A DNA stretch of 64,000 bases from Octopus bimaculoides (GCF_001194135.2 NC_068995.1:38015944-38079943); one strand, 5' to 3'; shown: positions 1,336-33,012, numbered from the stretch's first letter. The notes: generated from the letters alone by a model not told the origin. Made by a program: numbers and translations.

Positions 1336-2538
1336 ATGTTTTTGTTAATACTATATCAAATGTTGGTACTGACTCCAAATATATTGATAACAAATTCTAA
1401 CCCTACGGAGGATGATGAAAGATTACTACACATCAAAATATTATCCAATTATAACAAATATATAAGACCGGTTATTGATTTGGAAACACCGGTCGATATA
1501 TATGCTACCATAATGCTTCACACATTCAATGATTTGGACTTAGTGAATAACGTACTGAGGGCTCAGTACTACATTGGACTACAATGGACTGATGAAAAGT
1601 TACGGTGGGACCCCTCGGATTATAATAACATTACAAATATTCATCTAGTAAAAGAAAATGCTTGGAAACCACCTATTGTATTATGCAATTCAATGGAAAA
1701 CTCAGAAGATAAAGATGACTTCCCTGAACTGTGGATTTTTAGTAATGGACATGTGGTTATGTATTCTTTTAGATTACTAAATACATATTGTGAAGTCAAC
1801 GCATATACTTATCCATTTGATAAGCATATGTGCGAAATTTACATGTGTGTTGCTTTGCATAGCGTACAGCACACAAGAATAAAAACTCTGGATTACCATG
1901 AGTTAAATTTTATACAAAACTATAAGTGGGATATCACGCTTGAAGGTACGGTAAATGCCACGAACGATAAATTTAACTACGCATTTGCGCCGATGTATAT
2001 ACGACGTAGAATTACCATAGAAGTCATAGCTATGCTGATTCCGTCAGTAATGATGACTGTTTTAACTATTTTCGTTTTCCTTCTACCTCCTGAATCTGGA
2101 AAGAAAGTTTTTCTTGCGATGACGACATTTTTATCAAACGTGTTGTATCTTGTTCAAATAGAGAAGACGACACCAAAAAATTCAAAATATCCTTGCCTTC
2201 TTATCTTATATTTAATGCTATTGTCGATGTTGAGTGGATTCACTGCAATTGGTTCGGTAATTATAAGCAGATTGTATGTAATTCAAACTTCTGATGGAGA
2301 GAAATCAAATTCACCAAATCAAAATAGAAAGAAATCCCATGCTAACCAAATTGCTGACGTTTCAATAATTGCCTCGGCACAATCGAATACATTTAATCCA
2401 GAAGAAAGGCCAAGAGCAAAATGGTTTTGCATATCCGACTACACTCGATGTGATGACATATTTCTAAGAATTAGCATTGTGATATCGGTAATAATTTCAT
2501 TAATATTTACATGTCTACTGTTTACTCATGATGACTAA
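1336..2538 (+). CDS. Atypical nicotinic-receptor-like Cys-loop channel subunit; cephalopod chemotactile receptor (CR) family, CRT1-like paralog 1 (400 aa, single coding exon)
   Basis: Uninterrupted ORF. N-terminal hydrophobic signal; LLxxILSNYNKxxRPV helix; WTDEKLRWDPSDY; WKPPI; Cys-loop C-x13-C (CEVNAYTYPFDKHMC); RRR before M1; M1-M2 linker LPPESG; M2 with 9' Leu (FLSNVL); M3; short M3-M4 loop; M4. No loop-C YxCC, no loop-B Trp, and Cys replaces the loop-A Tyr. Closely resembles octopus CR sequences as I recall them. Confidence 0.95.
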   Translation: MFLLILYQMLVLTPNILITNSNPTEDDERLLHIKILSNYNKYIRPVIDLETPVDIYATIMLHTFNDLDLVNNVLRAQYYIGLQWTDEKLRWDPSDYNNITNIHLVKENAWKPPIVLCNSMENSEDKDDFPELWIFSNGHVVMYSFRLLNTYCEVNAYTYPFDKHMCEIYMCVALHSVQHTRIKTLDYHELNFIQNYKWDITLEGTVNATNDKFNYAFAPMYIRRRITIEVIAMLIPSVMMTVLTIFVFLLPPESGKKVFLAMTTFLSNVLYLVQIEKTTPKNSKYPCLLILYLMLLSMLSGFTAIGSVIISRLYVIQTSDGEKSNSPNQNRKKSHANQIADVSIIASAQSNTFNPEERPRAKWFCISDYTRCDDIFLRISIVISVIISLIFTCLLFTHDD

Positions 2539-3080
2539 AAGAAAAGAATAACGAAGGTGTATCAGAATACAGCATGATATACATATTAATATCATGTATG
2601 GGCTTAGATGAAAAAATATCAGCCATATATATGGAGTGTTGTTTATCAAGTATTGTACTACTACTTCTGCCATTCTACTAGCACTAAAATACTGCAAATT
2701 ATTTACAGATATGTGAATATGACCATACACACAAGAACACAAATTGGGTGATTATTCTATATCTTGAAATAATTTATTAATTTATAAACAATGTATTCAC
2801 CCAAATCGACATATGACATGTAAAAGCAGTCTCATTATCTGAAAACAAAAAGACATCTGTAGGCATACATCCATACATACATTGAATTGATACATACCTA
2901 CATATATACATATATACATACATTTATATATACATATTTCTATATATATATATATATATATATATATATATATATATAGAGAGAGAGAGAGAGATAGATA
3001 GATAGATAGATAGATGTGTGTGTATGAGGGACAAAGACACAAACACATATACGTTCAAATACACACACACAAACACATAA

Positions 3081-3228
3081 ACGACGAGCTTCTTTCAGTT
3101 TCCGTCGACTAAATTCTCTCATACGGCTGTGGTCGGCTCGAGGCGCAATACTAGAAGATACCCACGTTGCCAGGCGGTGGATCTCAACCCTGAAAGACGC
3201 GGTGAGGAAGTAATCGTCTAACCACACA
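3081..3228 (-). mobile_element. tRNA-derived SINE, family A (ends ...ggaaactgaaagaagcccgtcgt + microsatellite)
   Basis: Reverse complement matches copies at 7928-8066, 27761-27906 and 47101-47235. Confidence 0.75.
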
Positions 3229-3628
3229 GTGGCAATTTATACATGTACACATGTTTGTGTAAAGTTTGTTGACGGAAGGTAACATTAATTATTATTGGTA
3301 ATGACGACGATATTGAAAATAGCTTCCAAAGTGCAGCAAGATATGATGGTATTGCAAGAGTCAGGAGTTTTGCTAGGCCATGCCAGTTGCAGTTAATTTA
3401 TCACATGAACTAGTCAACTGACGGACACACATACATTTGTCATTATTCAGTTTTCTTTCAAGATTTCATGCCAATAAAGTGCTGTTTTGTAACCTAGATC
3501 CTTCATTGGAATTTCAACATCAACAGCAGCGTATTTTTATGCATATATGTATACGTGCAGATCTGTATGTTTTGTTTTATGTATGTCTTCTCATGCATAT
3601 ATTTGCATAACTAGAATGCTCCATATAC

Positions 3629-30990: not shown

Positions 30991-31287
30991 ATAAATACAT
31001 AAANNNNNNNNNNNNNNNNNNNNNNNNNNNNNNNNNNNNNNNNNNNNNNNNNNNNNNNNNNNNTATATATATATATATATATATATGCATATCTGTGTTT
31101 ATGTGTTCGTGTGGTAAGATCATTATTCCGTACTTTGTAAAGGTATCGTTGGATCCTTTACATTTTTCTTTAATTATTGCTACGTTTATGTCAATGAGTG
31201 TAGTGGTTGGCAGATGGTCAACAGAAACATATTACATATGTGCTTTTCAAGCTTAATGCGTTTGTATGATTTGATACAATGAATTAT

Positions 31288-31300
31288 CGTTTTGTTTCAG
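31288..31300 (+). promoter_or_regulatory. Candidate 3' splice site of a 5'-UTR intron of CR paralog 2
   Basis: cgttttgtttcag, about 520 nt upstream of the ATG, at a similar distance to the candidate site of paralog 1. Confidence 0.3.
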
Positions 31301-31818
31301 ATTGCTGATTCAACCCATGCATGACAATCTGCTGTTTTACATATCGTCAATGGAAATACAGAGTAAATTTTGTCACACGGAACATATTTGCTAACATAAT
31401 TTCCAGTTGAGATTAAATTTGCTAATATGGGAAGATAACTAATATACTTCACTAATTAATCTAATGAAATTTACAAAATGGACGTACTGAAATGAGAAGA
31501 CTTTTGCAAACTGGCAAATTCTGTTGACATCTGTAGTGTAAAAATTCACCGATAACACACAATAGCAAATTTATTAGATTTCATACTTTAAAACGAAAAT
31601 CAGAAAGGTTTAATCGCAGCATATTTTGATAATCATGTCTTTCATGTCGTTATGTGTAATGGAATTACTCCTCCATATTGCAGATGTTAGAAATATATCG
31701 TAATATTACCATTAATTTAATAACTGCTTTTCTTTCATTCAAGATAATTGAACAAATTGTAAAATTACCAGTAATCTATAAGATGACAATGTTAAATCAC
31801 ACACGGAAACACTGAAAA

Positions 31819-33012
31819 ATGATGTCAAAACAATATTTTGTGATTCTGATACCGGTTATATCGATAGTAATTTCGTGCCCCACGTACAAGGATGAAACAT
31901 TATTACAAGCAACTTTATTATCTAATTATAACAAAGGTGTGAGGCCTGTTATTGATTTATCTACAACTATCAATATCGAAGCTGCTTTATTTCTTCACAC
32001 ATTCTATGGTCTGGACTTTGTAAATAATATAGTTACAGCTCGGTACGACTTTAGTCTAGAATGGACTGACGAACTTCTGACTTGGAATCCTCTAGACTAC
32101 AACAACATTACAGTTATATACATAGAAAAAGATAAGCTGTGGACACCAGAAATCGTAATGTGCAATGCAATGAAGGAATCAGAAGAGAAAGGTAGCTTTC
32201 TTGAAGTAAAGGTTTTTAATAATGGACGTGTACAAATGCGGTCACTAAAACTGCTGAAATCCTATTGCACATTTGATGCTTACGCCTATCCATTTGACCA
32301 GCATGACTGCGAAATATACATTTGCGTTGCTTTGCATGATCCTGTCCATACAAGAATAAGAACACTTACATATGATAATTTAAATTATTCCCCAAACTAT
32401 AACTGGGACATCGACTACAATGGTATAAAAAATGCTTCCGACCAGAGATTCAGCGTCGTATTTGCTCCATTGCATTTACGACGTAGACTCACAATAGCTA
32501 TTGTAGCTATGCTGATTCCAACAATAATGATGACTATTTTGACTATATTTGTCTTCCTTCTACCTCCAGAATCAGGGGAAAAAGTTTCTCTAGCTACGAC
32601 AATATTTTTATCAAACGTTTTGTATCTTGTTGAAATCGAGAAAACTACACCGAGGAATTCCAAATTTCCTCCACTTCTTATGACATACTTGATGCTATTA
32701 TCACTTTTAAGTGGTATCGCAACACTTGGGTCGGTGATTATATGCAAGTTGTATGTCATTCAGTCATCTGATGAAAAGACATCGAACCTCCCAGATCAAA
32801 CAACAAACAAATCTCGAAGCAACAAAATTGCGGATAGTTCAACAATTACCACGAGAGAGAACGATCCCGTAACTTTGAACTCAAAATCAAATACGAAAAC
32901 TAAATTTTGTATAACCGAATATTTCCGACTTGATGAGACATTCCTGAAAATTAGCATTATAACAACAGTAATAATTTCAATATTATTTACTTCTTTCTTG
33001 TGTACACAATAG
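31819..33012 (+). CDS. Atypical nicotinic-receptor-like Cys-loop channel subunit; cephalopod chemotactile receptor (CR) family paralog 2 (397 aa, single coding exon)
   Basis: Uninterrupted ORF with signal peptide, LLSNYNKGVRPV, WTDELLTWNPLDY, WTPEI, Cys-loop CTFDAYAYPFDQHDC, LPPESGEKVSL M1-M2 motif and four TM segments; lacks YxCC. Aligns almost gap-free with 1336-2538 (hand count: about 54% identity in the ectodomain, about 74% over M1-M3). Confidence 0.95.
   Translation: MMSKQYFVILIPVISIVISCPTYKDETLLQATLLSNYNKGVRPVIDLSTTINIEAALFLHTFYGLDFVNNIVTARYDFSLEWTDELLTWNPLDYNNITVIYIEKDKLWTPEIVMCNAMKESEEKGSFLEVKVFNNGRVQMRSLKLLKSYCTFDAYAYPFDQHDCEIYICVALHDPVHTRIRTLTYDNLNYSPNYNWDIDYNGIKNASDQRFSVVFAPLHLRRRLTIAIVAMLIPTIMMTILTIFVFLLPPESGEKVSLATTIFLSNVLYLVEIEKTTPRNSKFPPLLMTYLMLLSLLSGIATLGSVIICKLYVIQSSDEKTSNLPDQTTNKSRSNKIADSSTITTRENDPVTLNSKSNTKTKFCITEYFRLDETFLKISIITTVIISILFTSFLCTQ

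Follow-up and report, generated by a model that had tools for sequence, protein, structure and literature searches.

Two open reading frames in the stretch of Octopus bimaculoides chromosome CM046615.1 analyzed here (64,000 nucleotides, referred to below as the window) are, with a probability of about 0.9, intact, selectively maintained, intronless chemotactile receptor (CR) genes belonging to the tandem array of CRT1. ORF1 (1336..2538, + strand; 400 amino acids) is the sister paralogue of CRT1 and its immediate downstream neighbor; ORF2 (31819..33012, + strand; 397 amino acids) has the canonical CR pore (G-E-K-V-S ... L9'). Both are open from start to stop. An initial annotation of the window had described them as intact, single-exon frames of 397-400 amino acids on the same strand, 30.5 kb apart, and this is accurate: both are gap-free, and they are separated by 30,483 bp, start to start. 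The unstranded intergenic spacer (2539..31818; 29,280 bp) is AT-rich and contains microsatellites. Six gaps had been listed for this span; there are in fact eight, totaling 2,655 N, those at 29295-29931 and 31004-31063 having been missed. The gap closest to ORF1 is at 6349, 3.8 kb downstream, while ORF2 is flanked by the gap at 31004-31063, 755 bp upstream, and by another at 33970, 958 bp downstream. Both ORFs are free of N runs; the reading frames are therefore independent of the gaps, and the intergenic distance alone is an estimate. A tblastn search of the window yields no additional CR copies or fragments, and the gap-free ORFs of the spacer yield no Pfam match and no recognizable coding domain.

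The CRT1 gene (L004:4838-6070), whose product is identical to the solved construct at 399 of 399 residues, is located 3.9 kb upstream of ORF1, just beyond the edge of the window. The gene order is CRT1, ORF1, ORF2, the latter two being the copies immediately downstream of CRT1, and it is unchanged at the O. sinensis locus. Farther upstream, on the same strand, lie the CR genes P0015 (37.98 Mb), P0020 (37.93 Mb) and P0008 (37.83 Mb). The proposed membership in a CR cluster is thereby both confirmed and sharpened: CRT1 is the next gene upstream, three more CRs on the same strand are found within 217 kb, and the single-strand array P0008, P0020, P0015, CRT1, ORF1, ORF2 spans at least 217 kb (37.83-38.05 Mb of CM046615.1). 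The O. bimaculoides CRs, 26 in number, are described as intronless and tandemly clustered (PMC11526382, PMC13174522, 10.1101/2025.03.03.641191). For ORF1 and ORF2, one uninterrupted ORF encodes the full-length protein in O. bimaculoides and at the orthologous loci, in three species. (A technical note: an in-frame stop is found 1-2 codons upstream of the ATG in both ORFs, and intron-free status refers to the coding sequence, introns in the UTRs being possible.)

That the family is already known had been recognized at the outset; the CRs were, in fact, defined on this very genome, and as a family assignment the two ORFs consequently add little. Both loci are almost certainly known as well, residing in public protein sets under automatically assigned nAChR names that mislead. 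The practical value of the assignment is that it places two receptors beside CRT1, structurally the best understood of the CRs, with a testable prediction attached to each. Two details look new: Lys at -1' and Phe at 2' of ORF1 M2, and an Asp/Arg/Arg ligand pocket in ORF2.

What places these proteins among the CRs? Both contain the Pfam domains Neur_chan_LBD (PF02931) and Neur_chan_memb (PF02932). In a sequence search of the PDB the best solved match of each is CRT1 (CR518; PDB 8EIS, 9E6B-D, 9YI4), with E = 2.4e-157 for ORF1 and 2.5e-148 for ORF2; squid CRB1 (PDB 8EIZ) is the next best (E = 1e-42 and 1e-37, respectively), and nAChR and 5-HT3A chains follow at about 1e-31 for both ORFs. CRT1 shares family, array and strand with the two ORFs, is 60% identical to both, and has in common with them the intronless gene, the fold, a pair of cysteines in loops A and B, and the absence of the ACh aromatic box. 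Squid CRB1 and the decapodiform CRs are members of the same nAChR-derived CR superclade, but at about 28-35% identity. The nAChR (alpha7, muscle alpha/beta) and 5-HT3A subunits are about 20-29% identical to the ORFs; they share the pentameric Cys-loop architecture, the Cys-loop, four TM helices, the PPESG M1-M2 linker and the 9' Leu gate, while the ORFs differ in their short M3-M4 loop and intronless genes. A neighbor-joining tree (200 bootstraps; about 30 CRs, with molluscan and echinoderm nAChRs) puts both ORFs inside a CR clade that separates from the nAChRs with 100% bootstrap support. They fall within the octopus-specific expansion (98.5%) and not in P0033-P0037, a CR group that is farther away; each of the two orthogroups, ORF1 and ORF2, has 100% support, and ORF1 and CRT1 are sisters at 83.5%.

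A Cys-loop and four TMs had been ascribed to both proteins. The Cys-loop is formed by C152 (1789-1791) and C166 (1831-1833) in ORF1, and by C150 (32266-32268) and C164 (32308-32310) in ORF2. The AlphaFold model of ORF1 has four TM helices (residues 228-249, 255-278, 288-323 and 362-397), and its top Foldseek match is 8eis_A (TM 0.96, RMSD 1.4 A). For ORF2 the Pfam match, the hydrophobic segments (M1, M3 and M4 are detected) and an M2 nearly identical to that of CRT1 point to the same four-TM topology. Two further cysteines, in loops A and B, constitute a CR-specific pair (CRT1 C96 and C150): C117 (1684-1686), which occupies the place of the loop A Tyr, and C171 (1846-1848) in ORF1, C115 (32161-32163) and C169 (32323-32325) in ORF2, so that the four cysteines span 1684..1848 and 32161..32325 (+ strand), respectively. 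The members of this pair are present together in 26 of 30 CRs and jointly lost in 4, and because of this co-variation they probably form a disulfide.

The reported lack of an ACh aromatic box is confirmed by alignment with the canonical alpha-type subunits P0026/P0028 (LYN, GxW, YNCCP): in both ORFs loop A has Cys at the Tyr position, loop B has Ala/Leu instead of Trp, and loop C is shorter by 6 residues and has no vicinal Cys. Public relatives of the ORFs bear names such as "acetylcholine receptor subunit beta-type acr-2-like", and the Pfam domains of the ORFs are common to nAChRs, as one would expect of ordinary ACh-gated nicotinic receptor subunits. None of the three ACh-binding features (Tyr in loop A, Trp in loop B, YxCC in loop C) is present, the CR clade separates from the nAChRs at 100% support, and the match to CRT1 surpasses that to any nAChR by over 100 orders of magnitude; that identity is scarcely credible and is rejected at the sequence level.

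The two genes are also maintained. Intact orthologues of ORF1 are found at L002:10001-11203 (O. sinensis) and L005:776-1978 (a third octopus species), and of ORF2 at L003:9785-10978 (O. vulgaris) and L006:946-2139 (the third species). Compared with the third species, dN/dS is 0.46 for ORF1 (p = 5e-6) and 0.30 for ORF2 (p = 1.5e-12); for the closest species pair it is about 0.63, which is marginally below 1 (p = 0.07 and 0.04). Every pairwise comparison is free of coding indels over the 400 and 397 codons, while the flanks have 7-12 gap runs per kb. A dN/dS below 1, together with the absence of coding indels next to indel-rich flanks, implies that both genes are maintained by selection, in keeping with their initial description as functional, diverged members of the family. 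Single-exon genes in repeat-rich, AT-rich DNA might otherwise bring to mind decaying retrocopies or chance open frames, the more so as the public model of ORF1 is truncated: it is 341 amino acids long, starts at Met60 and is without the signal peptide (a defect that matters for cloning). The selection tests and the intact orthologues in three species speak against this, as does a probability of only about 0.025 per gene that a frame would remain stop-free under neutral substitutions; the notion is highly improbable, and is rejected for both ORFs on the basis of the selection tests.

CRs are contact chemosensors of octopus suckers that respond to poorly soluble ligands and are insensitive to ACh, properties that family membership suggests for ORF1 and ORF2 (PMC11526382; 10.1101/2025.03.03.641191), although ACh insensitivity and activation by poorly soluble molecules are established, among CRs, for CRT1 and CR840 only. 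CR subunits reportedly come together in multimeric complexes of various kinds. By analogy with the family, ORF1 and ORF2 subunits would assemble as pentamers in sucker sensory cells; their poorly soluble ligands would bind at the subunit interface, which is the ACh site of the nAChR, and binding would then open the pore. The only non-reference (Logan) contigs are of genomic origin and do not represent transcripts. One of the two ORFs might be CR840 itself, the second CR to be cloned (homomeric and chloroquine-responsive), and that ORF would then already be characterized functionally. CR840 does come from the same 26-member family and the same genome, but the prior is about 2 in 25, nothing ties either ORF to the name, and ORF1, given its pore (discussed below), is unlikely to be a homomeric cation channel that expresses well. 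The chance is accordingly slim.

It is in the pore that the two proteins part company. A cation-channel-type M1-M2 linker had been claimed for both; ORF2 has it (PPESG-E-K-V-S), and ORF1 does not (PPESG-K-K-V-F). The selectivity-filter codons of ORF1 (2101..2112, + strand) specify K256 (-1', AAG, 2101-2103), K257 (0'), V258 (1') and F259 (2', TTT, 2110-2112); all three species use the same two codons, AAG and TTT, at -1' and 2'. Among 36 aligned sequences, K(-1') and F(2') are restricted to the ORF1 orthogroup, the other sampled CRs and nAChRs having E and S/T. Of 154 instances of the M1-M2 motif, taken from 136 nAChR-like proteins, 148 have E at -1' and 3 have K, all three K coming from the ORF1 group. 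(The sample includes about 10 of the 26 CRs reported for O. bimaculoides, and "unique in the family" is therefore limited to the sampled set.) The G-E-K cation-type filter of nAChR and 5-HT3A is shared by ORF2, while ORF1 is without the -1' Glu; ORF1 does retain 9' Leu and -4' Glu. Its M2 differs at 5 positions from the family consensus, with which CRT1 M2 coincides; relative to CRT1 the changes are E(-1')K, S(2')F, T5'M and I7'T. The cation-type pore (G-E-K, polar 2', 9' Leu) is a typical feature of the CR family, not one published as defining it. The ORF1 variant may already have been noticed in the literature: a 2026 preprint describes the CR clade as having "mixed ion selectivity patterns". 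For the pLGIC selectivity filter ORF1 amounts to a natural experiment, in which the Glu and Ser/Thr found in almost all cation channels give way to a positive charge and an aromatic ring.

What might such a subunit do? ORF1 is a sister duplicate of CRT1 that has kept a CRT1-like hydrophobic pocket, but in which Lys has taken the place of the -1' Glu and a bulky Phe that of the 2' Ser. Most likely it would co-assemble with CRT1 or other CRs of the Glu type, and the resulting heteromers would have a lower conductance or Ca2+ permeability. That it serves in this way, and not as an ordinary homomeric cation channel, is a tentative proposal, at slightly less than even odds. Heteromeric pLGICs include non-conducting or conductance-setting subunits; in muscle receptors the gamma/epsilon subunit, which has Gln at -1', provides an example of a single subunit with a non-acidic -1' residue tuning the conductance of a heteropentamer. 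The analogy would be a functional one, with ORF1 the more extreme case: its -1' residue is fully positively charged and its 2' residue is aromatic. A subunit of this kind could explain different ionic signals from CR heteromers.

A different outcome can be imagined for a homomer. The -1' Glu ring is the main determinant of charge selectivity and conductance and the dominant barrier to chloride, and its removal shifts several pLGICs toward anion permeation (PMC8011927); anion selectivity has, moreover, arisen repeatedly among the molluscan relatives of the nAChR (PMC13174522), and the K and F of ORF1 are kept in three species. An ORF1 homomer with its Lys(-1')/Lys(0')/Phe(2') filter might thus be non-selective or anion-permeable, making ORF1 an inhibitory or shunting chemoreceptor instead of a modulatory subunit. 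However, the residues typical of anion channels (-2' Pro, -1' Ala, 0' Arg) are absent, the -4' Glu ring is kept, and five 2' Phe side chains may simply block the homomeric pore. This outcome is unlikely.

The channel core of ORF1 has evolved faster than that of CRT1 since their duplication: in the Tajima relative-rate test on M1-M3, 13-16 changes are unique to ORF1 and 2-4 to CRT1 (p = 0.018-0.001, four outgroups). It is also less constrained, M1-M3 dN/dS being 0.17-0.45 for ORF1, 0.07-0.20 for ORF2 and 0.04 for CRT1, which fits a partial relaxation of constraint as well. Is ORF1, then, a relaxed duplicate that no longer conducts normally and is subject to drift, or that acts only as a non-conducting or dominant-negative subunit without an adaptive role? 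The elevated rate and reduced constraint are what one would expect of it, and the whole-gene comparison with O. sinensis gives a dN/dS not significantly lower than 1 (p = 0.07). Yet the frame has stayed open and indel-free in three species (dS about 0.35) next to flanks with 8-12 indel runs per kb, whole-gene dN/dS relative to the third species is 0.39-0.46 (p <= 5e-6), and the derived pore residues are themselves conserved; this explanation is rather improbable. It is possible, if on balance doubtful, that ORF1 represents a conserved CR subtype, present in at least three octopus species, with a remodeled filter, which arose through duplication in the CRT1 lineage and subsequent accelerated change of the channel domain and which would be either a dedicated pore-tuning partner of CRT1-type subunits or a CR whose cation selectivity is inverted or lost. 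If so, octopus chemotactile coding would diversify through ion permeation besides ligand pockets.

In ORF1 (1513..1974, + strand) the pocket residues, with their CRT1 equivalents, are M60 (Y39), Y79 (Y58), Y143 (W122), F145 (F124), L174 (L153), K212 (L191) and F213 (F192). The hydrophobic core is retained, including CRT1's Y58, F124 and F192, and Y39, W122 and L191 are replaced; the two positions tied to progesterone binding are altered. ORF2, with a pore identical to that of CRT1 from -4' to 16', differs in carrying charged residues in a pocket that is normally hydrophobic (32047..32448, + strand): D77 (32047-32049) in place of CRT1 Y58, R141 (32239-32241) in place of W122, and R210 (32446-32448) in place of L191, with L143 in place of F124. 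Among 30 CRs, only the three sequences of the ORF2 group have D, R and R at these positions. Since the Tyr/Trp/Leu of CRT1 correspond to Asp/Arg/Arg in ORF2, the ligands of ORF2 are expected to be of another class, more polar or charged, and it is reasonably likely that a standard CR cation pore is here coupled to just such a departure from CRT1's ligands, a hint of chemistry beyond the greasy molecules studied so far. The vestibule position of CRT1 E104 is acidic in both proteins: D in ORF1 and E in ORF2.

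An ORF scan finds exactly two long gap-free reading frames in the window, both on the + strand: ORF1 (1336..2538, 400 aa) and ORF2 (31819..33012, 397 aa). Their products are 56% identical, and each contains the Neur_chan_LBD and Neur_chan_memb Pfam domains. Aligned with canonical alpha-type subunits, both have Cys in place of the loop A Tyr, are missing Trp in loop B, and carry a loop C shortened by 6 residues, the vicinal cysteines gone: the initial annotation's two intact Cys-loop ORFs devoid of ACh-binding loop features are indeed what the alignment contains. When all PDB sequences are searched, the top match is octopus CRT1 (CR518, the solved octopus chemotactile receptor, or CR), at E = 2.4e-157 for ORF1 and 2.5e-148 for ORF2; squid CRB1 comes second (1e-42 and 1e-37, respectively), and 5-HT3A and nAChR chains reach only ~1e-31. 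The AlphaFold model of ORF1 (pLDDT 78.5) has four TM helices and superimposes on CRT1 (8eis_A) with TM 0.96 and RMSD 1.4 A. A bootstrapped NJ tree places both ORFs inside the CR clade (100%) and its octopus expansion (98.5%); the ORF1 and ORF2 orthogroups are each recovered at 100%, with the ORF1 group sister to the CRT1 group (83.5%). The proposed CR-family reading is borne out by these PDB matches, the superposition and the tree. (A profile search with the 30-sequence CR alignment recovered no further CR members.)

As a family assignment this is ordinary. The CR family is known and was defined on the O. bimaculoides genome, and both loci are already in public protein sets, so that novelty is low. 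Two details go beyond it among the sampled CRs, the residues of the ORF1 pore and those of the ORF2 pocket, and each provides a specific, testable lead at the level of the receptor.

A further family feature is a pair of cysteines, one in loop A and one in loop B (CRT1 C150), which co-occur in 26 of 30 CRs, ORF1 and ORF2 among them; the other four are without both. This co-variation suggests a CR-specific disulfide between the two. Loss is always joint: in P0009, the ORF2 orthologue of a third octopus species (SRR11869390, L006:946-2139), the pair is replaced by Gly and Thr, and P0021, P0024 and P0032 likewise lack both cysteines.

CRs are intronless and tandemly clustered, and number 26 in O. 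bimaculoides (PMC11526382, PMC13174522, 10.1101/2025.03.03.641191). Exact-protein look-ups place ORF1 at 38,017,279-38,018,481 and ORF2 at 38,047,762-38,048,955 of CM046615.1 (GCA_001194135.2). CRT1 itself sits 3.9 kb 5' of ORF1, just beyond the window edge, with 399/399 residues matching the solved construct. The same strand carries three more CRs, P0015 (37.98 Mb), P0020 (37.93 Mb) and P0008 (37.83 Mb), which gives the array a minimum extent of 217 kb, and the claim that the two ORFs belong to a CR cluster stands. The order is the same in O. sinensis: CRT1 orthologue, reverse transcriptase-like ORF, ORF1 orthologue. (The intervening 260-aa O. sinensis ORF, L002:6013-6795, looks by eye like a C-terminal stretch of LINE reverse transcriptase; it has no Pfam match at E <= 0.01.) Some 5 kb 3' of P0020, at L013:16036-16569 (CM046615.1, about 37.94 Mb), there is a 177-aa product with a Neur_chan_memb domain only, probably a CR pseudogene fragment within the array.

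Public gene models do not treat these loci equally well. The public ORF2 protein is exact; the ORF1 model, P0002, is a 341-aa protein starting at Met60, and leaves out codons 1-59 (window 1336-1512), which encode the signal peptide and an N-terminal helix. Full-length orthologues from two further species back the 400-aa frame. In O. vulgaris (OX597828.1) the ORF2 orthologue has been modeled (P0019) as a 329-aa protein spliced over 10.4 kb; L003:9785-10978 nevertheless holds one uninterrupted 397-aa ORF, and the spliced model is probably a mis-annotation.

Are these functional genes? Intact full-length single-ORF orthologues exist for ORF1 in O. sinensis (L002:10001-11203) and a third octopus (L005:776-1978), and for ORF2 in O. 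vulgaris (L003:9785-10978) and the third octopus (L006:946-2139). For the nearest species, dN/dS is 0.62 (p = 0.07) for ORF1 and 0.63 (p = 0.04) for ORF2, values too weak by themselves for calling selection, which was accordingly judged from comparison with a less closely related species, from dN/dS by domain, from the number of indels and from simulation under neutrality. Against the third species dN/dS is 0.46 (p = 5e-6) and 0.30 (p = 1.5e-12), respectively; for M1-M3 only it is 0.17-0.45 for ORF1 and 0.07-0.20 for ORF2. No comparison shows a single indel across the 400 and 397 codons, as against 7-12 gap runs in the 1-kb flanks, and in neutral simulations with the observed number of substitutions the frame stays stop-free in ~2.5% of runs per gene. 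Taken together, the dN/dS ratios, the lack of coding indels and the simulation place both ORFs under purifying selection, and the earlier reading of them as functional genes, with intact orthologues in three species, is sustained. In both, the channel core has evolved more slowly than the ligand-binding domain, a pattern already published for CRs. (Logan contigs of the ORF2 orthologue from five runs, with near-identical ends, were considered as mRNA and rejected: their microsatellite ends, absence of poly(A) and collinearity with genomic flanks mark them as genomic.)

The pore of ORF1 is another matter. The initial annotation credited both ORFs with a cation-type M1-M2 linker; this is correct for ORF2, whose pore is canonical, and incorrect for ORF1, and it is the sole point on which that otherwise sound account, observation and interpretation alike, has to be amended. 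ORF1 reads PPESG-K-K-V-F-L where CRT1, ORF2 and all other aligned CRs and nAChRs read G-E-K-x-S/T, placing Lys at -1' (AAG, 2101-2103) and Phe at 2' (TTT, 2110-2112); both ORF1 orthologues share these residues, with identical codons. In a set of 154 M1-M2 motifs from 136 nAChR-like proteins (the background being a 50%-identity representative library, which collapses the octopus CRs and was used solely for this purpose), Glu occupies -1' in 148 cases and Lys in three, each of them an ORF1-group sequence; outside that group, Phe at 2' is seen in one unrelated protein only. A 2026 preprint speaks of "mixed ion selectivity patterns" among CRs, and says no more than that (PMC13174522). CRT1 has the family-consensus M2, from which ORF1 departs at five positions (-1', 2', 5', 7', 19'). 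By Tajima's relative-rate test ORF1 has changed more than CRT1 since the two duplicated, with 46-58 unique changes vs 18-31 over the whole protein, and 13-16 vs 2-4 in M1-M3 (p = 0.018-0.001, four outgroups). In cationic pLGICs, charge selectivity and conductance are set chiefly by the ring of Glu at -1' (PMC8011927), and a homopentamer with five Lys(-1') and five Phe(2') should therefore conduct cations poorly. Three readings can be offered: 1) ORF1 may be a subunit that co-assembles with Glu-type CRs, plausibly with its neighbour CRT1, and tunes conductance or Ca2+ permeability. CR subunits are able to combine into varied complexes, and only CRT1 and CR840, the second cloned O. bimaculoides CR, have been cloned as homomers. 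This is the preferred reading, with a probability of somewhat less than one-half. 2) ORF1 might form homomeric channels whose selectivity is altered or anionic, which we regard as unlikely. 3) Less likely again, ORF1 could be a partly relaxed or dominant-negative copy.

With ORF2 it is the pocket that deviates. CRT1 pocket residues were taken from two preprints, and their numbering was verified (offset 20). The ORF1 pocket stays CRT1-like: it keeps Y58, F124, F192 and L153, and differs from CRT1 by W122Y and, at the pair of sites associated with binding of progesterone, by Y39M and L191K. ORF2 carries Y58D, W122R, F124L and L191R; D, R and R at positions 58, 122 and 191 are found only in the three ORF2-group sequences among 30 sampled CRs, a sample that covers about ten of the 26 members known from O. 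bimaculoides. Judged from these residues, the ligand specificity of ORF2 is probably unlike that of CRT1, and may be directed toward more polar or charged amphiphiles.

The assembly has 17 N gaps in the window, eight of them between the two ORFs (29295-29931 and 31004-31063 included). The nearest lie 3.8 kb 3' of ORF1, and 755 bp 5' and 958 bp 3' of ORF2. None touches either ORF, so that both frames are safe and the one estimated quantity is their 29.3-kb spacing, of which 2,655 bp are N; the gap at 31004-31063, 755 bp 5' of ORF2, leaves its promoter region incomplete. No third CR copy or fragment is detected in the 64 kb by tblastn with the ORF1 and ORF2 proteins, and there is no CR in the 31 kb of window remaining 3' of ORF2. 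Hidden genes in the microsatellite-rich spacer or downstream were also sought and discounted: tblastn, Pfam (no match at E <= 0.01 for nine gap-free ORFs), tRNA and Rfam scans yielded only microsatellites and one match to U6 spliceosomal snRNA at 46986-47093 (+) (53.6 bits, gathering score 44, model 1-105 of 105), which may represent either a U6 gene or a retro-pseudogene. Other ORFs of at least 150 aa run through N, apart from a gap-free 168-aa ORF at 59675-60181 (+), by eye like an N-terminal stretch of mariner/Tc1-type transposase, with no Pfam match (E <= 0.01). GC skew is strongly positive (+0.31) across 56001-60000, vs about 0 elsewhere in the window.
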